This document shows positions 296 to 15,911 of a stretch of 16,565 bases of DNA, in pieces. The notes under the pieces are model-generated. The model had not been told where the DNA came from. It ran no database searches and saw only the letters and a program-made list of their open reading frames with translations. A program made the position numbers and the translations under genes. Source of the DNA: Marsupella aquatica (Eukaryota; Plantae; Marchantiophyta); contig CCZZQB010000057.1 of NCBI GenBank assembly GCA_973895155.1, positions 1 through 16,565 on the forward strand. Reading direction: 5' to 3'. Within the stretch, counting starts at the first letter, position 1; each line of letters begins with the position of its first letter.

Positions 296-3200
296 TTATG
301 GATCCTCTATGAACTTGCTTGGCCATAATACCAAAGAACCTGCAGCATCTCCAAGTGTCTTTTGAGGAGGATCATCATTTGTGTTTGGAATGGGAAGGAC
401 AGCTTTAGGTTTCACTAGTAATGTGACTAACACTACTGAATAACCTGGGGGAATCCTCTTGCCATGGAACGTTGTGGAACCAACCTGCACTCTGGCAAAT
501 CCTACTCGTGTTCCACTCTCATCAACAGCTAACAAGCCACTTTGTCCCTCAGCATTAGGTGCTTTCCCCACTTCCACCTTAGATCTTTCTGCCAGCACTG
601 TTCTTGGAGGTTTGTATGAAACCTTTGACGTGGCTCTGCTCCCACCAGCAGACTTGCTTCGTGTGCGCATGCTTCCTCTCTTCACAGTAGTGAAGCTAGG
701 CTCAGTAGGTTCCTCTGTTAGGACTGTCACAGTAGCAGGTTCATCACCTGGGAGTGTCATACCAACTAACTCTTTGGTTGGATTTATCTCAACAAGAGGC
801 ACACCTGTCATTGAGAATGATACATTCTGCAAATCATTTATCTCTGCAATGGAGTCAAGATCTACATAGCATGAATCTGGCTCAATGGTATCATTGTCAT
901 GCTTGCTGATATCCTCATTTGCCCCAACATTGATATCATCCACTCCCTTGCCAATGTCATCCTCATCCAAACATGGTTGACTGCCCTCTGTCAAACAAGT
1001 TGCTTGTACAGACTGCAACTTTGTTGCCTCTAAATTACAGCGAGTATTTGCCAGGTTCTCATACTTCTTCTCTGTAGCACCTGTCTTATTCTCTATGGAC
1101 ACAACAACCACAATATATGTTACTGAAAATAACACATTCAACAAACAATGTCAATTCAAACTATACATTTAATAATCATATCCCACACAGTTGTAAAGGC
1201 CTTACCTTCAAGCCTACATGTCGTTGGCATGCCAGAAGAGTGCATCGACTTTGCCACCTCAAGTGGTGATGGTGGAACTCCTGCAGAATTGGAATCAATT
1301 TTATCTCTCACCGACACAACAGCTTCCATTAATGTCTTGAAGTTCACATGGAACAAGTCAGTCAATGAATTCAAACGTTCATTGATCTCTGGAAGACATG
1401 TTTCGACAGCCTTCAAACGACCACTTATCTCTGTAAGTGAAGATCCACCTCCCTACATGACACAGGGGTATAGGTTCAATCACTCCATATGAAATGTTGG
1501 GCAATATATGCACAATCAATGTTATATACAGTGTACACCTGAAATTCAACGCAGGTCATTCAATTACCAATCAGAACTCATATAACTTACATGCTTGGAG
1601 GATTCAGATGCACCCTCTTGAGCCCGGGTGTTCACAATTTCAGCCCTCAACTCTTCTTTTGAAGGGCTTTGCCCCAATTGGGCTTTCTGCACATGCATGG
1701 CAAACACAAGTTATCGATCAATATTCAGGGAACGTACACTAAAAAACAAAGTTTACATGTAGGGACAGTACACTAAAAAATAGTACATAGTGTAGCATAA
1801 ATTACATAGCTAGGCCATTCATTCTTACCAAACGTTTAGCTGTCGGTGCAGTGCCGGTCCTTCCTGTCAGATTAGGGTTCTGAACACTCAACCTGGCCTC
1901 GGTCATCTGTGAACTCTTCTTTTTTGAAGCATCTGTTACAAAATAAGCTACTAACCTTGCCCACACTTTATCATCACAACTGGCTGGTGGAGGCATATCT
2001 GGCTTCTCCCCACCTTCCTTCCAAGCCTTATGCATTCTCCACCTCTCTTGCTTGATAATTTTACCTGCTGTACTCTCTAGGCAACCTATGTCCACGCCAT
2101 CATCACTGCCCACATAATTCCATTTGGCAGCAACATTTTCACATACAGTCTTCCAATCTTTTGGATGCTGTTTTTTAAAATTAATAACACTCACATCTAA
2201 CCAACGCAATACTTCAGCTTTCAAATCAGCATGCCATCGGTTCTTGCGAGGACACTCAGCATCCACCCATTGTCTCTCATTCAACTTTACGTTCCCTTTC
2301 TTTGTCACCTCCCCTCGTGCACTGCTCTCGGTAGTACTGGGCGTTGTATTGGCCACCCCTTCATTCACCCTACCTGGGGTTCTGAAGCCACCTGGGAAAA
2401 TACAATGCCATTCATGCTTGAGAACTACATATAGCAGAATGGATGACGGCAACATTCAATGCTTCACTTCAAGAAAAATTCTTCAAACATACATACCTGT
2501 AGCTCTGCCTGTAGATGCCTGTGCAGGGACTGCACTCTGAAATTGTTGCGACCCTGGACCACCTGTCCAGCCTAGTACAGGGGCCGGATGATGTCACTTT
2601 CTAGGTATGTGTGTGCAAACATATGTACTGAAAACTAAGTACAAACTGTAGGAAAACAACTGAACATTCACCGACATACCTGTCCCCCTTCCGTGCTGCA
2701 TCTGCATAGGGGCATTAGTGAATACTTGAGTCGATGGTTCGACTGTCCAACCTGCACACATACATTTTCTATCATTATACATGTGCAGAGTCCCCCCCAC
2801 GTGAATGGACTCCACATATAATGAGTTCTTCCATTGCTGACAAGATCAGACATTACCTGCTCCTCTTCCAGCGTTTGTAGGTACTGAATTTTGATATCCC
2901 TGCCAATTACCTTCACCACCTTCCCAACCTTGTTCATTCCACGACCCACCACCATCCTCCCAACCTGGTTCAACCCATGTCTGTCCTTGTGGACATTGGA
3001 ACTGATCATTACTAGCATTTGCCCAATCAGGTTGGGCAGAATCTGCATGCAATGGCAGGTGGACAGAATTTCATGTTGTCTGAATCCAATACATCCCAAA
3101 CAATGTCAAAAATTGATATGCAGTCTGAAATTCAGGAGTGCCATGCCTTCACAAAGAACTGGCATATAGATATATACTCACATCCCCACGGTTGAGGTGG

Positions 3201-4003
3201 ACGTCCATACCCACGAGATTGTGGGTTTGGACCTGCTCTGCCTCTACCACGGGCATAACCTAGAGCTTGCCCCCTGCCATAGTATTGGGCACCAGCCTGG
3301 GATCTACCACTACTACCACCTCGCCAACCTTGATCAGAGGTCAGCCCCCCCTGCTGGTATGGTGCATGCACAGGCTTCGAAGGCAAAACAGAACTGGCAG
3401 GACGCTGCATCACATCACCAACTACAATGTCAGGAACTAAGCAAGGTACATATGTGTAGTACTGAACATATGAAACCTCTAAACAAGAGTTTTTAACTCA
3501 AAACCTTGTTGGGAAAACTACTTACATGTTTCTTTTGGGGCTGCTCTGCAATGTATTCATCTTCATAACCCCCATCCTCATCCATTTCCTCTGGAAAATA
3601 CTCATCATCTGCATCTTCTTGTCTAGTGTCTGCACCCACCTGTGCAGCATCAATGTCATCTCCACATTCTGCCATTGTAGGTACGACCTTCTTGCTCAAC
3701 CTGTCACTCCGACGCACAGGCCCAGAGATAGTGCTGGTCACCCTTCTTGCGTACTCCTTTTGTTTCTTTGAAAATGCTGTGGCTCTGCGACATTCCAATA
3801 TGAGAATACAGTCACAATTTCAGTGCCACATTGAACTATTCATGTCACACAAACTCAGCGGAGGGGTGTAGTTGAGAATCGTTCCCTTACAATTCAGCCA
3901 CATCCTTTTCCAGATCCAGTTCTGCGATTTTGGCTTTCACGTATGCTCGTTGTTCCATAGCTTTCCTTTCATACTCACACATCTCTGTGTCACTCTGTTC
4001 CAT
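296..4003 (-). CDS. CACTA TnpA/TNP1 (Ptta/En/Spm-like) accessory protein, 10 exons: 4003-3891, 3784-3526, 3404-3182, 3042-2857, 2751-2680, 2571-2497, 2391-1829, 1686-1591, 1452-1206, 1092-296 (2631 nt, 876 aa)
   Basis: Nine GT-AG introns (105-139 bp) link ORF-track fragments with matching phases and no internal stop. The N-terminus has a CEYERKAMEQRAYVKAKIAELDL helix typical of CACTA second ORFs. Exon 7 is Ptta/En/Spm-like (WARLVAYF...KKKSSQMTEARLSV..NLTGRTG). The C-terminus is DUF8039-like. The exon 3 acceptor (3405) and the start codon are the least certain parts. Confidence 0.82.
299..535 (-). other. DUF8039-like C-terminal domain of the TnpA/TNP1-like protein
   Basis: Motif VGFARVQ..FHG..IPPGYSVVLV....KAVLPIPN..D....LGDAAGSLVLWP matches the recalled consensus of the CACTA TNP1 C-terminal domain (HG...V.V......LP.P......LGDA.G..V.WP). 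Confidence 0.8.
2497..3404 (-). other. Low-complexity G/Q/W-rich segment (exons 3-6 of the TnpA-like gene) with GW/WG and RG/GRG motifs
   Basis: The spliced translation contains SDQGWRGG, QPWGY, EPGWEDGGGSWNEQGWEGGEGNWQG, GAGWTV and GTGWTGG: six GW/WG dipeptides and ten Trp in about 190 aa. Confidence 0.8.
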
Positions 4004-4159
4004 CCTACTGGACCACAAAAACATGTCATCTATGGTCACCCCGTATAACACAATGCAACCACAATCACCAGGCATCCATCCATACATCTGTGTTGCTTCA
4101 GAATTACTTTATTACACATCCTTCCCCTCACTAATGTCTATGCAAACAATTCACATTAC

Positions 4160-7100
4160 TCATGGCACAGGCACACTGTTGGCATCTGCATCTCTGAATT
4201 CGCCTCCTTCAGCAAATGCATCTACCCTTGTCACAGGAATGAAGTCCCCGCTATCATGAACTACAGGCACTTGGTCTGAACGCCGACGATCAAAGGCACT
4301 ATGAGAGTGTAAATGAAACTCAAGGTTTGATCCTTCCATCCGGCGTTGCCTGGCCTGTTTATGACACACTACACGCCAACCTGGGGAGTCTTCCACATCC
4401 AGGAAGAAAGCTTGCTCCACCTGACTAGGAAACACAAATGGCTCAGACCATTCGGGCAATTTCCCTCTGAAATTGGCCAGCAAGAAACCGTCGTTGTCTC
4501 TCTTCATGGTAGCCCTGTTACCAAGCCAATCCTGCCGCACCCATGAACCTTTCATAAGAATCACAGGACTGGACACCGCCCCATAGTCCAGAGCCCATAT
4601 GTCAACTAATTCTCCCACATATCCCATCTCCATCCAGGCCCTGTCGTGATTGTGGCTCTGTTGCTCAAATACAGTGATGAGCCCGCAGTCATTCGTCACC
4701 CTGTAGGCACTGTCACCATCCTTCACTCGGAAGTGATTCCCATATGCTCTCATCCGTTTGTAAGTCTTCACTTTCAGGCTAGGGGCATTAGACAGTAGGT
4801 AAACATCTGCATCCATGTCTGGGTGGGTCTCGTGATGCTCTCTAATTGCCACTCTGATCCACTCCATGAAACCTGGAAAAGTTGTTCCTGCAGTGGGATG
4901 GGCCGCCTTCAATGACTCATACTCCCTGAACGAACAACCACACAGCATTAGCTTGGGTAAACATGAACAGGCTGAAGGAGAAAACCACACGAACACAACA
5001 TTTAAGCTCATGAACTGGATTATAGCACATGTATGCACTCACTGTATCCAGGGTTCCATCACCACAGTGTTGTGCAATACAAAGTCATGTGCCAAGTCTC
5101 TCATAGATATGGTCAGGTTCTTTGTGGTTGCAGCCCCTTCCAGTACTTCACCTACCACCCCTTCCTCCTCATCAGAATTCCACACCCTGGTCTTCACATG
5201 CTCATATTGTGCTATGTATTCGGTCAGAAATCCCAGAGTCTCATCCTTGATGTAACCTTTAGCCATGCTTGCTTCAGGTTTGTAATATGTTCTCACGTGA
5301 CCTTTGAGTAGCTTCATGTACCGTTCCAAAGGGTACAACCAACGAGCACTCACAGGCCCAAATTGGTGTAGCTCTTCCACAACATGGACAAGTAGGTGGG
5401 TCATGACATCAAAAAATGCGGGAGGAAAATAAATCTCCAGGTCACACAGCACCTGAGCGACATCTTCTGTCAGTTGTGGGAAGTGTGTTTCATCCCAAAC
5501 CTTCACACAAATACGACGAAACACATCACTGAGTCGCATGATCACAGTACGAACAGGCTTCTGCAACAGGCCCCTCAGGCATAAAGGCAACACCTGTTGC
5601 ATCAACATATGGTAGTCATGGCTTTTCATACTACCAAGCTTTCTAGTCATGATATGCTTCTTGAAAGCACTGCCATAGTTTGAAGGAACCTTCAAAGAAC
5701 TCAACCTCTGCACAAATAGTTCCCACTCTGTGTCTGTCAGAACATAGGGCGCTTGGTACTTCAAGAGCACATCAGCTCTGTGGGCATGTGGCCTCAACCA
5801 AAGATGGGGTTTCATTCCCCTCTGTTCAAGATCCAATCTCACTGAACCAGTGTCTTTCTCTCCACACAAGAATCTGAGTAGACTCTCACAAATATTCTTT
5901 TCAATGTGCATAACATCAATGTTATGTTTGCTTGGCTCAAACTCCTGCATCGTTGCAATGCAAAAGCGTCAGGAAATGCCTCAAGTTTAGTCTCTCTCTT
6001 CGAAATGAATGCACATGCTCTGAACCAAAACATGTATCCCAATTAGCATCAACTCCAAGAGGCTTACCCTCCAGTACTTGAGCTCCAAGTCCAATATGCT
6101 CAGTCTTTTTACACCATATCGCTTTATTGGATCACTCACTCCATCTTCCCTGCCCCCTCGTTTGATATAGTCATCCCTCAGTGCTCCCCACTGCCTGATC
6201 TCCTCTTTGGTCACTCGTGCCGGGGGTCCACGTTGCTCAATCTCATTGCCAAAGTGTGCAATCAGTGCCTGTCTTTCTCTGTAAGGGTGATCTGTCTTCA
6301 GAAAACGACGATGGCCCATGTATATCACTTTCTGCAGGGCTCTGGAGTACTCACTGGTGACATTGCGCCCACAGATAGTACAAGCACAATATCCTTTTGT
6401 TGTTTGGCCTGATATCATCCCATGGGCTGGGTAGTCAGCTATAGTCAGAATGACAATGGCTCTAAGGATGAATGGGTTTAACCTCCCAAGCCTCTGTAGG
6501 ACATCATATGTGAGAACTCCTTCCTCCCAAAGCTTTCTCAATTCCTCCACTAGGGGAGCCAGAAACACATCTATGTTGGCAGATACAGCACTGTCTGGCC
6601 CTGGTATCAGTAGGACCATCAGAACAAAAAATCGCTTTGTAGTCATCCAAGGAGGAAGGTTATAATTCAAAATAGTTACAGGCCAGCATGAAAATTTGTT
6701 GTTCTTGTCTCCAAATGGGTTTACCCCATCCAATGACAGCCCAAGTCTGACATTCCTCGGCTCAGCAGCAAATTCGGGATACATCTCATCTATGAGTTTC
6801 CATTGCCTTGAATCTGCAGCATGTCGTTGTAGCCCATCATCACTTTTCTTGTCAGTTGCCCAAGTCATCATCTCCGAGATGGCACGGCTTCTGAACATCC
6901 GCTGAAGTCTGGGAATGAGTGGAAAATGACGAAGTACCTTGGCGGGAACCATAGACTTTCCTGAGTTCCGATACCTGTGCTTCCCACACTTAGGGCATGT
7001 CAACGATTCTTTATACTCCTTTCTGAAAAGAACATGCCCATCAGGACAGGCATGGATCGAATCATAGTTCAATCCAAGATTAGATATGCATCTTTTTGCC

Positions 7101-7891
7101 TCGTACATGTTCTTGGGCAAAATATTACCATCTGGTAGCACAGTTGTTCGCAAGAATGCCAACAACTCAGAAACCAAAACGTTGGGGACATTGTGGTTGC
7201 CGCAAATGTTCAGGAACATGATGACAAATCCCAGTTTAGAACATTTGCTACCGGGGTACAAAGACTTCCTGCCTTCCTGTATTTGCAGGGGAGAGCCAAA
7301 CATCCCATCATGCCCAGGGGTTTCCTGCCCTATCTCAAACTCATCAAGAGGCTCTTCGACAGGGGGCACACTTGCATCTGCAGCCGTATCCTCTTCATTG
7401 TCCAGCCCATCATGAAATGCATCCAAGTCTTGGAAGATGTCTCTCACCATCTCTTCCACATGAATTCCTTCGTCACGTGGTGCTGCCTGAGCACCATCCC
7501 GTTGGAGAGCTGACAACCCACAGAGACCAGCTACAACATTTTCAAATGCACCAGGCAGAACCTCACTTGCCCGTCTTGCAGCATTGGCAGCATCAAATTC
7601 TAACCTCCACTCCTCGTCGGAAGAATCTTCCTCTGCAGGATCATTCCAAACTCGATGTCGTGGATCTCTTCCATGAACCGCGATATGCCGCCAAACCTCA
7701 TTCAGACCCCTGGTACGGGATCCTTGGCAGATTGCACAAGGACATCTCATCCTACTGGCTCCTGAAAGTCTGGTTCGTAACCTTTCACGCTGCCAAAGCT
7801 TATTATCATGGCGTGATATCCTTGTGGGATGATGCAAAGGCAGTGCCTGTGCCCTGGGCTGGGTCTGGGGAGGGTGGTGACCAGGGTGCAT
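4160..7891 (-). CDS. TNP2: CACTA TNP2/TnpD-type DDE transposase, 3 exons: 7891-6068, 5944-5043, 4925-4160 (3492 nt, 1163 aa)
   Basis: Domain order: N-terminal transposase-associated Zn motif (RMRCPCAIC...RHIAVHG), HACPDGHVLF..CPKC, Transposase_21 core, HNIDVMHIEKN, DUF4218, DUF4216. Intron 6067-5945 (AGG|gtaagc...tgcag|GAG) joins YWR|EFEPSKHNIDVMH in frame. Intron 5042-4926 (CA|gtgagt...ttcag|G) joins PWIQ|EYESL in frame. Putative catalytic D (6728-6730), D (6434-6436), DxxH (5906-5917) and E (5324-5326) are all present. The exact start codon is uncertain. Confidence 0.93.
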
Positions 7892-8029: not shown

Positions 8030-8324
8030 ACCACCCCAAAAGAAAAAAACAGGTTCGCAAGTAGTGTACCTATTGTCAAGTGAATGACACAAAATTTCTA
8101 AATGTTGGAGGGTGTCACCACCTCCTCCGCTGTCCTCAAATGTACCGCCTCTGCATGTACGTTTACAGTGACACCCCCAGGCAGCAGGAAACAACAATCC
8201 GCCAACAATAAAATAAGCCCAACTGCCACCAACCATAACAAGGTACATTAGTTCAAAGATCACATTTATTTCAATGATCTGATTTATACAAAAAAACTTG
8301 TGTCCAAACTGATGCTACTACTCC

Positions 8325-9197
8325 TCACTCTGATTCAGAATCGCTAATGACCCATTCCTCACTTGTTGTCTCATAGTCCTCTCTGTAAGGATCCTGACCC
8401 TTCCGTGGCCAGGCCTCAAAAAGATCATAGTCCATTGGGTTTTGACGCTTCCCAGCTGCTACTGATTCCACAAGCCAAGCATATGAAACCACAAACACAT
8501 TATGGGACATGACATAAAAGCGAATGTCTCCCTTCCCAAACTTGCGGCAGGCTTTGGGATATGACTTAGTAATGACATGAGTGGTGTCCTCTGTTATATT
8601 CTCCTCCACTGTCCCACCTAGGTCAAGCACTGTGGACTTGTACACTTTGCACTTAACCTCTCCAATTCCCGCCTCCACAAATACCATGCTCAGCCCTTTC
8701 AGAATGGGGGTTGGTTGCTTCGTCTCCTCAGCCAACATACTCTTCAGCCTTGTAGAGCTCTGTCCTTTGTTGAGTACAGGTCCATATTGGAGATCAGCAA
8801 GCCGTGCCTTTGCTTCCCAGACTTCTTGTTCAGCCCAAGCTGATGCAGTAGCTTCTTCATCCTCCCACAACTCATATTGCTCAGTATCCTGTACAATCTT
8901 ATGTGCTATGGAATCTGTGATCCAAGAGGCCTCAACTACTTTTAGGCCTTGCTTAGTAATTGCAGAATTCATGTAGGACCATGACCACTTCTTTATCACT
9001 GATAGCCATGTCCCTGCAACAACATGTGTAGTCTCTGGAGTGATGTCCTGAACTACAGTGCCATGGAGCTCAGAGAATCGTTTCTGTACAGTTGGCCAAT
9101 GCACTTTGGTCAACCCATGCTGGCCATGGACCAAAATCGCTCTGACCCCTGTAAACACTGCTGGGTGGTCACACTTTCTACGTTTACCAGGCTCCAT
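8325..9197 (-). CDS. Tandem BRCT-domain protein (290 aa from ATG at 9197); BRCTs resemble the plant DNA polymerase lambda N-terminal BRCT; no polymerase domain
   Basis: Two repeats carry BRCT hallmarks (F/L.G, GG/HG.V, TTHVV/I, W+..S, terminal Y.L): VFTGVRAIL...LHGTVVQDITPETTHVV...SWITDSIAHK...YEL and ILKGLSMVFVEAGI...LGGTVEENITEDTTHVI...KFGK...YAWLVESVAAGKRQNPMDYDL. A basic GKRRK NLS-like motif precedes them. The ORF-track start at 9203 is a GTG. Confidence 0.88.
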   Translation of the reverse strand: MEPGKRRKCDHPAVFTGVRAILVHGQHGLTKVHWPTVQKRFSELHGTVVQDITPETTHVVAGTWLSVIKKWSWSYMNSAITKQGLKVVEASWITDSIAHKIVQDTEQYELWEDEEATASAWAEQEVWEAKARLADLQYGPVLNKGQSSTRLKSMLAEETKQPTPILKGLSMVFVEAGIGEVKCKVYKSTVLDLGGTVEENITEDTTHVITKSYPKACRKFGKGDIRFYVMSHNVFVVSYAWLVESVAAGKRQNPMDYDLFEAWPRKGQDPYREDYETTSEEWVISDSESE

Positions 9198-9790: not shown

Positions 9791-10471
9791 TCACAGCCAA
9801 GATATGTGATCTCTCACAGGAGTGCGCGAGGTAGGATCAATGGCATGGCGATGACAATAAAATATCCATCGATCAACACCATGTGCAGAGTGATCATAGA
9901 TTTCTCTGTCACAAGCATAACCCTCTGCTTGATGATCTTTCAGGCAATGATAGTGCCACATAGTGGGACACCTAGCACAGTGGACTATGTCAGTCCAGTA
10001 GTCATCATCATGCTCACCACATGCCTTGCACCTATGAAGTGGGCAAGCTGTGGCATGAGCAGGCAAACACTCAAAACAGAAAAATCTCACACAAAAACGG
10101 TCTGGACATTTCCTAACATTTGCTGCAGCATCAACAGAGCCCTCATAGGACCCCAACTTCCCACACTGTGCACACTTAGCCTGCTTCTCCAAACAATCAG
10201 TGCACATCCAGTCTCCCTGGTGTGTTGACGGGAGGCCCACCCCTGGACAGTTGTTTTCTGCAGCAAGGTCAGACTCCGGGTTGAGGTGGAAATGCCTCAT
10301 GCAAGGGCCCTCACAAATGACCAGGCCCCCACCATCGTCACAAATGGCACAACAATGAGCTGCCTTCTGGAAAATCTGACTTGCAGAGAAGTTAGTAGCA
10401 TCTGCCCCAAGTACACCTGTGTTTCTCACCTCTGTCACACGCTTTTTGGCTTGAATTTTAGGCCGTGCCAT
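9791..10471 (-). CDS. Stand-alone EDM2-like triple PHD-finger protein (226 aa)
   Basis: CAICDDGGGLVICEGPCMRHFH...C...WMCTDC...CAQCGKLGS...C....C...C..C...CPLHRC..C...CARCP..WH.HCL...IFYCHRHAIDPTSRTPVRDHISW follows the recalled EDM2 PHD block (CAICDNGG...CEGSCLRSFH...CPLHKC...CRRCPKSYH..CL...LIYC.EHEID....TPVRDH). It lacks the EDM2 N-terminal and methyltransferase-like regions. An acceptor-like tgcgcag|G lies just before the ATG. Confidence 0.88.
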   Translation of the reverse strand: MARPKIQAKKRVTEVRNTGVLGADATNFSASQIFQKAAHCCAICDDGGGLVICEGPCMRHFHLNPESDLAAENNCPGVGLPSTHQGDWMCTDCLEKQAKCAQCGKLGSYEGSVDAAANVRKCPDRFCVRFFCFECLPAHATACPLHRCKACGEHDDDYWTDIVHCARCPTMWHYHCLKDHQAEGYACDREIYDHSAHGVDRWIFYCHRHAIDPTSRTPVRDHISWL

Positions 10472-10482
10472 GCCTGCGCATG

Positions 10483-10626
10483 AGATAGACTCTACAATTT
10501 AGCAGACTGCACAGAAAGTAATATATATTTAGCATTTAAGGTACAAAGGCATTTAGATAGACTCTACAATTTAGCAGACTGCACAGAAAGTAAAATATAT
10601 TTAGCATTTAAGGTACAAAGGCATTT
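10483..10626. repeat. Tandem duplication, 2 x 72 bp, one mismatch
   Basis: 10483-10554 and 10555-10626 (agatagactctacaatttagcagactgcacagaaagtaa[t/a]atatatttagcatttaaggtacaaaggcattt). Confidence 0.97.
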
Positions 10627-12686: not shown

Positions 12687-13026
12687 ATCTTCGAAAAGAA
12701 GCCCACCACAATTAAGAACTTTGGTATCTGGGTGAGGTATCAGAGTTGTACAGGTTATCCCAACATGTACAAGAAATATTGTGATACCACATTAAACAAC
12801 CACACAGCAGATGTATGATGAGATGGCTTCTTGTCATAGAGTTCGGTTCCCTTGCATCCAGATCATCAAGACTACGACAGTCCCTGTCTCTCTGTGCAAG
12901 CGAGAAAGTACCAAGCAGTTCCATGATTCAAAGATCAAGTTCCCCTTGACGTACCGCAAGATTCAACCTCCATCGCGAAAGCTAAAGACGACTTACAAGG
13001 CCACCAAGCCCAACACATTTGTTTGA
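12687..13026 (+). pseudogene. RPL18A: 60S ribosomal protein L18a (eL20) fragment, C-terminal about 113 codons, with a frameshift near 12798-12810
   Basis: Translates as [37 protein letters not shown] / [73 protein letters not shown], clearly plant eL20. There are 13 nt instead of 15 between the N and M codons, giving a frameshift. The N-terminal part is absent. The fragment starts at an acceptor-like taccag|ATC. Confidence 0.93.
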
Positions 13027-13484
13027 GTAGTGCGGGTGTAGGTTCCCAATTTTGAAACAATTTGGCTCATTTTATGTCCCGAGGGACTCCAGGAGTTTAT
13101 GTATTGAGTTTCTAGGTCAAGATGCTTAATATAAGGAAATTCAATTATCACCTCGTTCCCAACTTCTATTAATTGAATATACACAAGCTGGAAGCAAGAA
13201 GACAAGCCACAATCTAGCATCTTAGCCAAACACAATCGTCCCGACAAAGCAAAACTCAGCTGGACAGAAGTCACTCGGATCCACAAAAAATTGAAGATTC
13301 ACCTCCAAGCCGGAGGCCGATCACTTCAGTACAGCAGCTTCTGGACGGAACAAACTCTGCTCAGCCCCACAAAAACACAAATGTTAAGGCTCCAAGTCAG
13401 AGCTCACAAACAGAAACTCAGATAAATAACATTCAAAATCTGTCCAGGTTTGTGCAAAGTGTACATATTCATTCTTCTGGAATG

Positions 13485-14310: not shown

Positions 14311-14865
14311 AGGACTTTGGACTTGAATGAGGGACAGCGTGGCCATATAGTTATCCTTGTGGCCTTCAGCTGCGTGTCTCAGGCTGAATTTCACTTTCCA
14401 GTTTCGAGAGTTCTGAAGGTCTAGTTTTAGTAACTTCCTCCTGACTCGACTTGGGAGCATTCTCCCTATTTGCTAGCTTGTAGTTAGCTTTGACTCCTGT
14501 GAGCTTAGTTGACGACCCTCTTGAGATATTAACAATTAGAACAAACACAAGTTGTCAAGACAGATTCCACCGGAGCAAAAAGTCCAAAATCAGGTGAAAG
14601 AAAACCTAAGGAAAGTCCATAAGAACGAAAGTAGGAAGGCAGGTGCACGGGCCACCGAGAAAAGTAAAGGATGCATGTGATTAGTGGGGAGGGATCTTAG
14701 CAAAAATAGGGGAAAGCAAGGGAACTTGCTGCTAAAATCAGCTGAACGATTGCACGGTTCCTATAAATTTAGTGGACCTTAAGGCCGTCTGTTCAGCCCC
14801 CCACCCCATTGCCAGAGCACGGGGCACAAGGCATGTTCTGATACAGGGAGGAGCAAAACAGTCAT

Positions 14866-15087
14866 GTCAAGCAAGAAATGTGGAGAGACCAATCAGTAAG
14901 CAAAAATAGGGGAGAACATACATACATGATCAGCAGCAGCAGGAAACAAGAAAGATGATTTTGGGTGGCATCTTAGGGTCGGGGACACCACTGCAACACC
15001 GGGACTTAGGATATGAGTTGTTCTTAATCTGCTAGTAGCATCCGGCAGGCCGGCGACCCATGGCAAAAGGGCAGAGCAACAATCCGC
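14866..15087 (+). repeat. About 220-bp direct repeat, copy A
   Basis: Aligns by eye with 15693-15911 at roughly 85-90% identity (gtcaagcaagaa...gagagaccaatcagtaagcaaaaatagggga...caacaccgggacttaggatatga...aatccgc). Confidence 0.95.
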
Positions 15088-15637: not shown

Positions 15638-15692
15638 ACTATACTTGCAGCCACGAGGTGAGTCCGCGATAGGGGATTGAAGGAAGCAGCAA

Positions 15693-15911
15693 GTCAAGCA
15701 AGAAGCGTGGAGAGACCAATCAGTAAGCAAAAATAGGGGAGAATAGACATACATCAGCAGCAGCAGGAAACAAGAAAGATGATACTCTGTTCCATCTTAG
15801 AGTCGGGGACACTACTGCAACACCGGGACTTAGGATATGACTTGTTTTTAAACTGGAGATAGCATCCAGCAGGCCGGCGACCCATGCCAAAAGGGCAGAG
15901 CAGCAATCCGC
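15693..15911 (+). repeat. About 220-bp direct repeat, copy B
   Basis: Matches 14866-15087; the copies start 827 bp apart. Confidence 0.95.

Follow-up and report, generated by a model that had tools for sequence, protein, structure and literature searches.

A tandem-BRCT gene with a Pol lambda-like repeat upstream of a CACTA-type transposase gene in Marsupella aquatica

Introduction

Does a transposon that makes double-strand breaks carry its own means of influencing how they are repaired? Break handling by cut-and-paste transposons is normally credited wholly to host factors, and it decides excision footprints and the restoration of the donor copy, and hence the rise in copy number. The BRCT domains of PolX polymerases (Pol lambda, also Pol mu and TdT) bind the Ku70/80 bridge via R57, L60 and F61, and Pol lambda that has lost its catalytic activity acts as a dominant negative, an effect that depends on R57 of its BRCT (PMC12056208). 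In the 16,565-nucleotide stretch of Marsupella aquatica DNA analyzed here (the window), a first-pass annotation had described a duplicated, polymerase-free BRCT protein, similar to the Pol lambda BRCT and encoded next to a transposase. Here we ask whether this gene belongs to the transposon, what its repeats are related to, and what its product might do.

Results

The window encodes a stand-alone protein with two BRCT repeats

The coordinates first assigned to the 290-aa ORF proved exact (Table 1), and both of its repeats are recovered by profile and by predicted structure. Pfam recognized BRCT (PF00533; E 2e-13, 50.8 bits against a cutoff of 21.3) in two stretches as well as BRCT_2 (PF16589; E 2e-11, 44.4 bits against a cutoff of 27.3), and AlphaFold2 predicted two beta-alpha BRCT folds for the full protein (mean pLDDT 81, pTM 0.50). 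With a profile score above cutoff and a predicted beta-alpha-beta-beta-alpha-beta-alpha fold, the product belongs to the BRCT superfamily. A domain-only model of repeat 2 reached a pLDDT of 92, and every Foldseek match, to the full model and to repeat 2 alone, was a BRCT domain. Repeat 1 holds tryptophans that are invariant in the family alignment (W64, W73 and W92), and the linker of about 50 residues, which falls below pLDDT 50 at residues 142-159, begins with a motif that is conserved in relatives (Y-E-L-x-E...T). The NLS-like N-terminus and acidic tail noticed at first pass are both present: the N-terminus is the basic PGKRRK, basic N-termini also occur in the relatives P0001, P0003, P0007 and P0028, and acidic Ser/Thr tails in P0001, P0002, P0004, P0005, P0014 and P0028. 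Rfam, tRNA and tandem-repeat scans of the window gave nothing bearing on the BRCT gene.

An exhaustive search of 1.8 billion protein representatives yielded 25 matches at E < 1e-3, which makes this a tiny family; word-indexed searches returned 2 matches with the single protein and 4 with the family profile. We counted 11 of the 25 as lying outside the family on the basis of E-value, length and sequence, so that membership is judged rather than tested singly. Family members are all at most 326 aa long, and the full-length homologues (264-313 aa, 27-61% identity) have coinciding starts and stops: the position of the N-terminal Met is the same in more than 10 of them, and the stop is kept together with the acidic tail that runs up to it. 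Because such full-length homologues exist, the ORF is far beyond chance. All seven BRCT ORFs examined are intact, and dN/dS between the window ORF and that of contig L001 is about 0.45 at dS 0.78; the gene evolves fast yet under purifying selection. Within the exhaustive search, no host parent was detectable for the whole BRCT protein and no longer host protein carried the BRCT pair, which speaks against the possibility, raised at first pass, that the ORF is an exon of a larger host gene.

Table 1. Features of the BRCT gene and its neighborhood, in window coordinates
Feature	Position	Strand	Basis and remarks
Single-exon tandem-BRCT gene, 290 aa, stand-alone	8325..9197	-	ATG at 9197, stop 8327-8325; ORF list and sequence; Pfam; homologues sharing start and stop
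BRCT repeat 1, aa ~12-112	8862..9164	-	AlphaFold2 secondary structure, family alignment, PDB profile search
Inter-repeat linker, aa ~113-163	8709..8861	-	Long helix 114-138, then disordered segment (AlphaFold2)
BRCT repeat 2 (the one closer to Pol lambda), aa ~164-262	8412..8708	-	Pfam, PDB profile search, hhalign, domain-only model
C-terminal acidic Ser/Thr-rich tail, aa 263-290	8328..8411	-	Sequence; low pLDDT; tails alike in relatives
AATAAA hexamer, possible poly(A) signal	8266..8271	-	54 nt past the BRCT stop; read from sequence
Short non-coding block between BRCT stop and TNP2 start	8183..8241	-	Conserved with L001: blastn 76% over 59 nt, and alignment
TNP2-type (TnpD-like) transposase gene, inferred intact, three exons	4160..7891	-	Pfam, splice sites read from sequence, collinear homologues
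PHD-finger gene, 226 aa, NSD-like three-finger cassette, first in module	9791..10471	-	Pfam, PDB matches, L004 homologue
TnpA-like downstream region	296..3798	-	ORF pieces 3798-3493, 3413-3132, 2455-1802, 1144-296

The BRCT gene recurs within one clade of CACTA-type elements

Pfam found no polymerase domain in the BRCT ORF, and the transposase gene begins 433 nt downstream on the same strand, which bears out the earlier description of a polymerase-free protein encoded directly upstream of a transposase. The transposase, read as three exons (7891-6068, 5944-5043 and 4925-4160) separated by GT..AG introns (6067-5945, 123 nt, and 5042-4926, 117 nt), is of the TNP2/TnpD type by its Pfam domains (Transposase_21, E 2e-70; DUF4218, 5e-28; DUF4216, 1e-4). 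Named angiosperm TNP2s are only 37-41% identical to it, and the nearest relatives of both the TNP2 and the BRCT protein lie on metagenome or Logan contigs. Further downstream, in the TnpA-like region, the ORF piece 2455-1802 has a weak, below-cutoff match to Transposase_24 (E 1.5e-4), the C-terminus of 1144-296 resembles a DUF8039 ORF of L004, and homologous downstream ORFs keep their order in L004 and L006. A TNP2 gene that encodes Transposase_21, DUF4218 and DUF4216 and precedes a TnpA-like region, with typical introns and gene order, is the arrangement of En/Spm (CACTA) elements; the window differs from these in having conserved PHD and tandem-BRCT genes upstream of the transposase.

The PHD ORF matches PHD-1st_NSD, PHDvar_NSD and PHD_NSD in Pfam (E 5e-5 to 4e-3, all under the gathering score), and AIRE PHD1 (E 0.003) and the NSD2 cassette (E 0.01) in the PDB. 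L004 encodes a full-length homologue, 38% identical, upstream of its BRCT gene, with both proteins ending in HISWL, and the 3' end of the PHD gene is also found at L001:3-41. The presence of the PHD gene could be checked in L004 and L001 only, because the remaining contigs are too short upstream. The order PHD ORF, BRCT ORF, TNP2, a module common to the whole element clade, had been overlooked at first pass.

A BRCT gene followed by TNP2 at a spacing of 290-580 nt occurs in four lineages (the window, L004, L008/L009 and L010-L012), which have diverged to 27-34% identity in BRCT and 44-48% in TNP2. All BRCT-bearing TNP2s fall in one clade of the TNP2 tree (SH-aLRT 99); L008 is placed differently in the BRCT and TNP2 trees. 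In the related elements L005 and L007, both outside this clade, upstream BRCT and PHD genes were looked for and are absent, and L006 is uninformative on upstream genes since its contig begins at TNP2. Candidate element termini, CACTAC..AAACAAAT, lie at 267 and 13032 (CACTACAAACAAAT at 267, its near-complement ending at 13032), with flanks that differ (TCA versus CGG) and so give no matching 3-bp target-site duplication; we estimated by hand a chance of a few percent for such a pair. A systematic search for CACTA terminal inverted repeats gave one candidate pair in the window and nothing convincing in L004.

CACTA elements are known to capture fragments of host genes. Given this precedent, and termini that are only candidates, the BRCT ORF might be an ordinary host gene or exon that lies beside the transposon by accident, or a functionless transduplicated fragment. 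We consider this extremely unlikely: the neighborhood recurs in four highly diverged, independent contigs from different samples, the ORFs are full-length, uninterrupted and at a dN/dS below 1, the presence of the BRCT gene is clade-specific on the TNP2 tree, and the exhaustive search contains no longer host protein with the pair.

The same fixed position on a shared strand in four lineages, with a short spacer before the TNP2 start and a small conserved block within that spacer, could also mean that the BRCT ORF is spliced alternatively onto the transposase, forming an N-terminal BRCT module of TNP2 and no free protein. En/Spm produces TnpA and TnpD from one transcript, and alternative splicing of the En/Spm type is well known (discussed in PMC13547354). 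Such a fusion is nevertheless improbable in our judgment, given the conserved stop with the acidic tail leading up to it, the coincident N-terminal Met in more than 10 homologues, the AATAAA beyond the stop, and L001, where the next ORF downstream of the BRCT gene is F-box-like and not TNP2.

The repeats arose by internal duplication and repeat 2 resembles the Pol lambda BRCT

Aligned with hhalign, repeat 1 and repeat 2 match each other with an E-value of 1.2e-26 over 102 columns with one small gap, in agreement with the duplication proposed at first pass. Neither repeat has a closer relative than its partner, and this points to a duplication within the protein.

The likeness to Pol lambda noticed at the same time for repeat 2 holds for that repeat; repeat 1 shows no such preference against the PDB. 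In a PDB profile search, the best single-domain match of repeat 2 was human Pol lambda (2jw5; 35.3 bits, E 9e-8), ahead of the best single-domain scores of other families (BRCA1 31.6, Rad4 24 and Rtt107 22.5 bits), and hhalign placed Pol lambda-type BRCTs (P0019, 7e-15; P0153, 1e-12) above the BRCA1-like P0020 and above P0017. Among the 11 matches read as non-family, Pol lambda-type N-terminal BRCTs are the most frequent type, with at least 4: P0024 groups with a protein named as Pol lambda, P0021 and P0025 match nothing in the PDB but Pol lambda at E <= 0.01, and P0019 is a weaker case. The distant BRCT matches P0021 and P0025 have no adjoining transposase and proved to be Pol lambda N-termini. 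For repeat 1, however, Pol lambda ranked low (19 bits, against 35 for Rad4, 32 for REV1 and 30.5 for PARP4), the margins for repeat 2 are a matter of a few bits, and Foldseek, with the full model and with repeat 2 alone, recognized BRCT without singling out PolX or assigning a subfamily. The resemblance of repeat 2 to Pol lambda is real at the sequence level, if by small margins, and by the same kind of evidence the family is closest, among outside sequences, to Pol lambda-type N-terminal BRCT domains.

Further likenesses to the PolX domains are a basic N-terminus ahead of the BRCT, a helix-1 motif in common ('G-I-G/Q ... aromatic') and the absence of a phosphoserine pocket from both. Differences are also evident. 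PolX enzymes combine a single BRCT with a polymerase core and are host repair genes, whereas the window gene is transposon-encoded and specifies two BRCTs without a polymerase, with a longer, Trp- or Tyr-rich helix alpha-2.

Plant genes of the BRCA1/BARD1 type encode a PHD-like domain followed by two BRCTs. The order of PHD and BRCT-BRCT in the module mirrors this, BRCA1 BRCT1 was a close second for repeat 2 in the PDB (31.6 bits), and the non-family matches P0018 and P0020 are BRCA1-like on sequence inspection; the PHD and BRCT genes might therefore descend from one captured gene of this type, with the Pol lambda similarity being generic. We judge this capture very unlikely, since BRCT1 is the BRCA1 domain to which both repeats align, with no meaningful alignment of either to BRCT2, and the two are mutual closest relatives, which would be unexpected had an ancient BRCT1-BRCT2 pair been captured collinearly. 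In addition, the BRCA1 phosphoserine pocket is missing, the PHD ORF is of the NSD/AIRE type with no BRCA1/BARD1-type PHD family at E <= 0.1 in Pfam, and the commonest kind among the non-family matches is Pol lambda-type.

Ku-contact positions, phosphate pocket and packing of the repeats

At the three positions through which human Pol lambda contacts Ku, repeat 2 has conservative changes (K182, V185 and Y186, aligned with R57, L60 and F61), and repeat 1 has H33, T36 and V37. Across the family the aromatic alone of the three is conserved. The R57 column is variable (K, K, T, R, S, A, W and others); no more than some half of the members have a basic residue there, so that a Ku-bridge interface conserved across the family is at best a candidate.

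Chromatin-reading tandem BRCTs such as those of MDC1, MCPH1 and BRCA1 use a Ser/Thr-Gly...Lys phosphate pocket, and BRCTs of the PolX, LIG4 and XRCC1 class have no canonical phosphoserine pocket. At the positions of BRCA1 S1655 and K1702 we found G25 (followed by Q26) and W73 in repeat 1, and A176 (followed by G177) and K222 in repeat 2, with a Ser-equivalent column that is variable across the family; the N-terminal repeat lacks the combination of Ser/Thr-Gly after beta-1 and Lys in alpha-2.

These residues bear on a further explanation, in which the two accessory genes form a chromatin-tethering module: the PHD protein would read histone H3 tails and the BRCT protein would bind a chromatin or phospho-protein partner, serving target choice or anti-silencing with no direct role in break repair. 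Precedents for such roles are the PHD finger of RAG2 and, in VANDAL elements, VANC. The PHD ORF is conserved beside the BRCT ORF, its top matches are histone-reading fingers (AIRE PHD1 and NSD2), and transposon accessory proteins that shift integration preference or oppose silencing form a recognized class (PMC13547354). The pocket of the MDC1, MCPH1 and BRCA1 type is missing from both repeats, however, the closest sequences outside the family are BRCTs of Pol lambda and not readers of histone marks, and the PHD evidence comes from two contigs besides the window. We regard tethering alone as unlikely, while giving it more weight than the other alternatives. The adjoining PHD gene, taken by itself, points at least as strongly to chromatin reading as to repair.

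In overall architecture, the protein shares two successive BRCT folds and strong Foldseek and HMMER matches with the pairs of BRCA1, MDC1, MCPH1, Rad4 and TopBP1. Those canonical pairs have a short linker (~20-25 aa) and rigid head-to-tail packing, in contrast to the partly disordered linker of the window protein. The model predicts no head-to-tail packing and gives the relative orientation of the repeats with low confidence (pTM 0.50; query TM-scores of 0.25-0.28 to known pairs), and the 18-sequence alignment behind it may be too shallow for a firm prediction of packing. DNA ligase IV likewise has two BRCTs set apart on a long, partly helical linker rather than tightly packed, and it is among the top Foldseek matches to the full model (9cq3, 7lsy and 3ii6; E ~1e-11 to 5e-10), with TM-scores of only ~0.26-0.28 and an rmsd of 23-24 A. 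The sequence similarity is weak (E 0.047, single sequence) and the window protein has no ligase domain. Ligase IV acts in end joining and binds without phosphopeptides, and by analogy the window protein might do both; the ligase IV linker binds XRCC4, and the linker here is predicted to resemble it in being long and partly helical.

Discussion

The BRCT ORF is best explained as an accessory gene that belongs to an autonomous CACTA (En/Spm) lineage, neither a host gene nor a junk capture. Our preferred reading of its product, which we put forward tentatively as quite possible, is a PolX-like adaptor or decoy. An ancestral element would have acquired a PolX (Pol lambda)-like BRCT module, including the basic N-terminus, and then duplicated it. 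The resulting protein would act without catalysis of its own, as an adaptor or decoy where the transposase makes double-strand breaks. It would dock on Ku-bound DNA ends by analogy with PolX BRCTs, and its linker helix and acidic Ser/Thr tail might contact further repair factors. Repair of the excision gap and of the ends at the insertion site would be altered as an outcome. One option is that clean rejoining would be promoted; the other is that gap-filling end joining would be blocked, so that the donor site would be restored by homologous recombination. A putative role at excision breaks, by docking on Ku or competing for it, is plausible, in line with the recruitment of, or competition with, end-joining factors suggested at first pass; elements of this lineage may thus come with an adaptor of their own to the break-repair machinery of the host.

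A bolder and rather unlikely extension is that this CACTA clade encodes a switch between repair pathways: the BRCT protein would occupy the PolX site on Ku and suppress gap-filling end joining, the donor site would be refilled from the sister chromatid, the element would become effectively replicative, and the PHD reader would pick the chromatin. If true, this would be the first eukaryotic DNA transposon known to have a dedicated adaptor or decoy for double-strand-break repair.

Accessory genes are known from other DNA transposons, among them VANC in VANDAL elements and a RAG2-like PHD protein beside a Transib/RAG1-like transposase. Our locus shares with such cases a non-transposase gene that is stably placed beside the transposase in one lineage, evolution that is faster than that of the core enzyme, and a presumed interface with host chromatin or repair. 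Comparable genes also include TET/JBP in fungal KDZ and CACTA-like elements (PMC12730594, PMC4411706, PMC13547354), and faster evolution of accessory proteins than of the core is the reported norm (PMC13547354). What sets the window gene apart is the BRCT domain type and the presumed link to double-strand-break repair, which are undescribed for the TET/JBP, VANC and RAG2-like cases. In the CACTA literature that we searched there was no mention of upstream PHD or BRCT genes, and in the literature searched more widely no CACTA or other eukaryotic transposon was described with a BRCT gene.

The stable carriage of BRCT and PHD genes suggests that the element itself intervenes in the choice of repair or chromatin. 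Our preferred reading would put BRCT on the short list of host-derived domains that have been recruited as transposon accessory proteins, and the way in which PolX BRCTs engage Ku could then be studied on a natural "enzyme-free PolX BRCT".

A tandem BRCT gene beside a TNP2 transposase

On the same strand as TNP2, the CACTA transposase gene, we found a BRCT gene whose stop lies 433 nt before the TNP2 ATG, as expected from the first-pass annotation, which had placed a protein with two BRCT repeats directly upstream of the transposase. The repeats were recovered both by Pfam (BRCT, PF00533, in two stretches, E 2e-13; BRCT_2, E 2e-11) and in the AlphaFold2 model, which predicts two BRCT folds (residues ~12-112 and 164-262) connected through a linker in which a long helix (114-138) precedes a disordered stretch (142-159). 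This model was built from a shallow family alignment of 18 sequences and has a mean pLDDT of 81, with a pTM of only 0.50. The basic N-terminus and acidic Ser/Thr C-terminal tail described earlier are also present. The tail is found again in three distant family members (P0005, P0014, and P0028), and we take it to resemble the casein-kinase-2-type motif by which repair scaffolds bind FHA proteins.

Features of the window
Feature	Position	Strand	Remarks
BRCT ORF	8325-9197	-	290 codons; ATG at 9197, stop at 8327-8325
Acidic Ser/Thr tail	8328-8411	-	aa 263-290
Spacer block	8183-8241	-	59 nt, non-coding, within the BRCT-TNP2 spacer
TNP2 introns	6067-5945; 5042-4926	-	canonical GT..AG; join three transposase ORF pieces
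Gly/Arg/Gln/Tyr-rich ORF piece	3132-3413	-	RGG-like low complexity
PHD-finger ORF	9791-10471	-	226 aa; three NSD-like PHD modules, sub-threshold Pfam matches
72-bp unit, two tandem copies	10483-10626		98-99% identical; from 12 nt upstream of PHD ATG
Candidate terminal inverted repeat	267-284; 13013-13032		CACTAC[TC]AAACAAAT
~225-bp segments	14863-15087; 15690-15911		84-89% identity; 824-827 bp apart

The transposase carries Transposase_21 (Pfam, E 2e-70), DUF4218, and DUF4216, and its three ORF pieces connect through two canonical introns, from which we infer that it is intact. By its TNP2 relatives and ~120-nt introns, the host is plant-type. In the related contig L008, the TNP2 frame (1716-4637 (+)) is open for 974 codons, including ~108 codons of intron-like sequence at the site of a stop-containing GT..AG intron in the window and contig L004. 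The Gly/Arg/Gln/Tyr-rich ORF piece belongs to the TnpA-like region that follows the transposase. The candidate CACTA-type inverted repeat would bound an element of 12.8 kb; the triplets flanking its two ends are unlike (TCA vs CGG), and the left end would lie only 29 nt from the stop of the last ORF. The ~225-bp segments, with no recognisable genes around them, may have been left by some other repeat or element beyond the CACTA.

The BRCT gene belongs to the transposon

Genomic context is the key result for assigning the BRCT gene to the transposon. The 13.4-kb contig L004, whose BRCT protein is 27% identical, is collinear with the window over the entire element (PHD ORF, BRCT ORF, TNP2, TnpA-like ORF, and DUF8039 ORF), and in L008/L009 (BRCT 34% identical) and L010-L012 (27%) TNP2 comes next, 290-400 nt after the BRCT ORF. 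A tree of TNP2 places the four BRCT-bearing elements together in one 11-member clade (SH-aLRT 99). L005 and L007 belong to other clades, and BRCT and PHD are absent from their 6-10 kb of upstream sequence. Given this shared context and distribution, a single acquisition of the BRCT gene, kept since then by the 11-member clade, is most likely. The first-pass annotation had raised the possibility of an exon of a larger host gene; the recurring element context and the clade-limited distribution indicate that it is neither a host gene nor a host exon, and a bystander host gene is a very unlikely alternative. L008 groups with the window group in the BRCT tree (94/94) and as sister to the L004 group in the TNP2 tree (98), with L004 joining L010 in the BRCT tree (99/99); an exchange of modules between elements, or an artefact of the trees, could explain this conflict.

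In L001 (BRCT 54% identical), the next downstream ORF (1722-2246 (+)) is F-box-like (Pfam F-box, E 0.005) and not TNP2, so that L001 may be an element variant with a further accessory gene, or rearranged. The spacer block is 76% identical to L001:1605-1663, and the adjoining spacer is unalignable; the block may have a regulatory or splicing role. Alternative splicing that joins the BRCT ORF to the transposase is a lesser alternative.

The PHD ORF lies 593 nt upstream of the BRCT gene and seems to be a further accessory gene of the element. Its PDB matches are AIRE PHD1 and NSD2. L004 has a full-length counterpart in the same position (38% identical, HISWL C-terminus in both), and the 3' end of a PHD-type ORF is present at the edge of L001; these are the only BRCT-bearing contigs that reach far enough upstream for the comparison. 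Judged from these sequences, the conserved unit is therefore PHD gene, BRCT gene, and transposase. A chromatin-tethering or anti-silencing module formed by the PHD and BRCT proteins is the main rival to a role in DNA repair, and we consider it unlikely. The 72-bp tandem copies could be a duplicated promoter or a subterminal repeat of the element.

The BRCT family is small and under constraint

Homologues of the BRCT protein (264-313 aa, 27-61% identity) can be aligned from first Met to stop, and the coding sequence is intact in all seven family genes for which DNA was obtained. The gene evolves fast yet under constraint (dN/dS 0.45 at dS 0.78 between the window and L001, the closest pair with DNA). 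In an Arabidopsis transposon atlas, core enzymes evolve slower than accessory proteins (PMC13547354). The family has very few members: among 1.8 billion representatives scanned exhaustively with HMMER, 25 matched at E < 1e-3, all <= 326 aa. On the basis of E-value, length, and sequence, we read 11 of these as non-family.

Resemblance to Pol lambda

Each repeat has the other as its closest relative: hhalign matches them over 102 aligned columns, interrupted by one small gap (E 1.2e-26). They also have an unusually long alpha-2 region in common, and this supports their origin by internal duplication. In PDB profile searches, repeat 2 scored highest with Pol lambda (2jw5, 35.3 single-domain bits), followed by BRCA1 BRCT1 (31.6), Rad4 (24), and Rtt107 (22.5); repeat 1 matched Rad4 (35 bits), REV1 (32), PARP4 (30.5), TdT (23), and Pol lambda (19). 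Among the non-family matches, P0024 clusters with P0153, a protein named "DNA polymerase lambda-like", and human Pol lambda is the sole PDB match at E <= 0.01 for P0025 (E 2e-12) and P0021 (E 2e-8). In P0019, a protein of the streptophyte alga Mesotaenium, a Ser/Pro-rich region comes after the BRCT; it matches P0153 (E 2e-11), and its only PDB match, a weak one, is Pol lambda (E 0.2). By hhalign, P0019 (repeat 2, 7e-15; repeat 1, 4e-13) and P0153 (1e-12; 5e-9) outrank the other outsiders compared with repeat 2, P0020, BRCA1-like by inspection (3e-10), and P0017 (6e-9). Capture from a BRCA1/BARD1-type gene, towards which P0020 and the BRCA1 BRCT1 score would point, is a lesser alternative. The Pol lambda resemblance noted in the first pass thus holds at the sequence level (PDB and hhalign), with small margins and no preference in Foldseek, where the high-confidence repeat-2 model (pLDDT 92) matched TopBP1, XRCC1, Rad4, MCPH1, REV1, Pol mu, and TdT with values that span no more than one order of magnitude.

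The positions of the phosphate-binding BRCA1 residues Ser1655 and Lys1702 are occupied by G25 and W73 in repeat 1 and by A176 and K222 in repeat 2, and the Ser1655-equivalent column is variable across the family; by alignment, the tandem therefore does not belong to the canonical phosphopeptide-reading pairs. Superposed on the BRCA1, Rad4, and LIG4 BRCT pairs, the full-length model reached a query TM-score of only 0.25-0.28 (Foldseek), which may reflect either a different packing or the limits of the model. PolX BRCTs dock on the Ku70/80 bridge, as established by cryo-EM and mutagenesis, with R57 and L60 most critical (PMC12056208). Through the P0019 and 2jw5 alignments, the Ku-contact positions R57, L60, and F61 of Pol lambda correspond to K182, V185, and Y186 in repeat 2; the aromatic residue is kept family-wide, and only about one member in two has the basic one.

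A BRCT protein as transposon cargo

VANC and a RAG2-like PHD protein are known accessory genes of DNA transposons. TET/JBP genes are further examples, from fungal elements (PMC12730594, PMC4411706). No eukaryotic transposon-encoded BRCT protein was reported in the full-text literature searched on BRCT with CACTA, EnSpm, transposase/TIRs, or DNA-transposon accessory genes. Loss of catalytic activity makes Pol lambda dominant-negative, except when R57 is mutated (PMC12056208), which shows that an enzyme-less PolX BRCT can perturb end joining. We tentatively propose, as the most likely mechanism, that an ancestral CACTA element gained a Pol lambda-like BRCT and then duplicated it. The resulting protein would serve, without catalysis, as an adaptor or decoy on the Ku-bound ends made by TNP2 and would modulate how the excision gap or the insertion ends are repaired.
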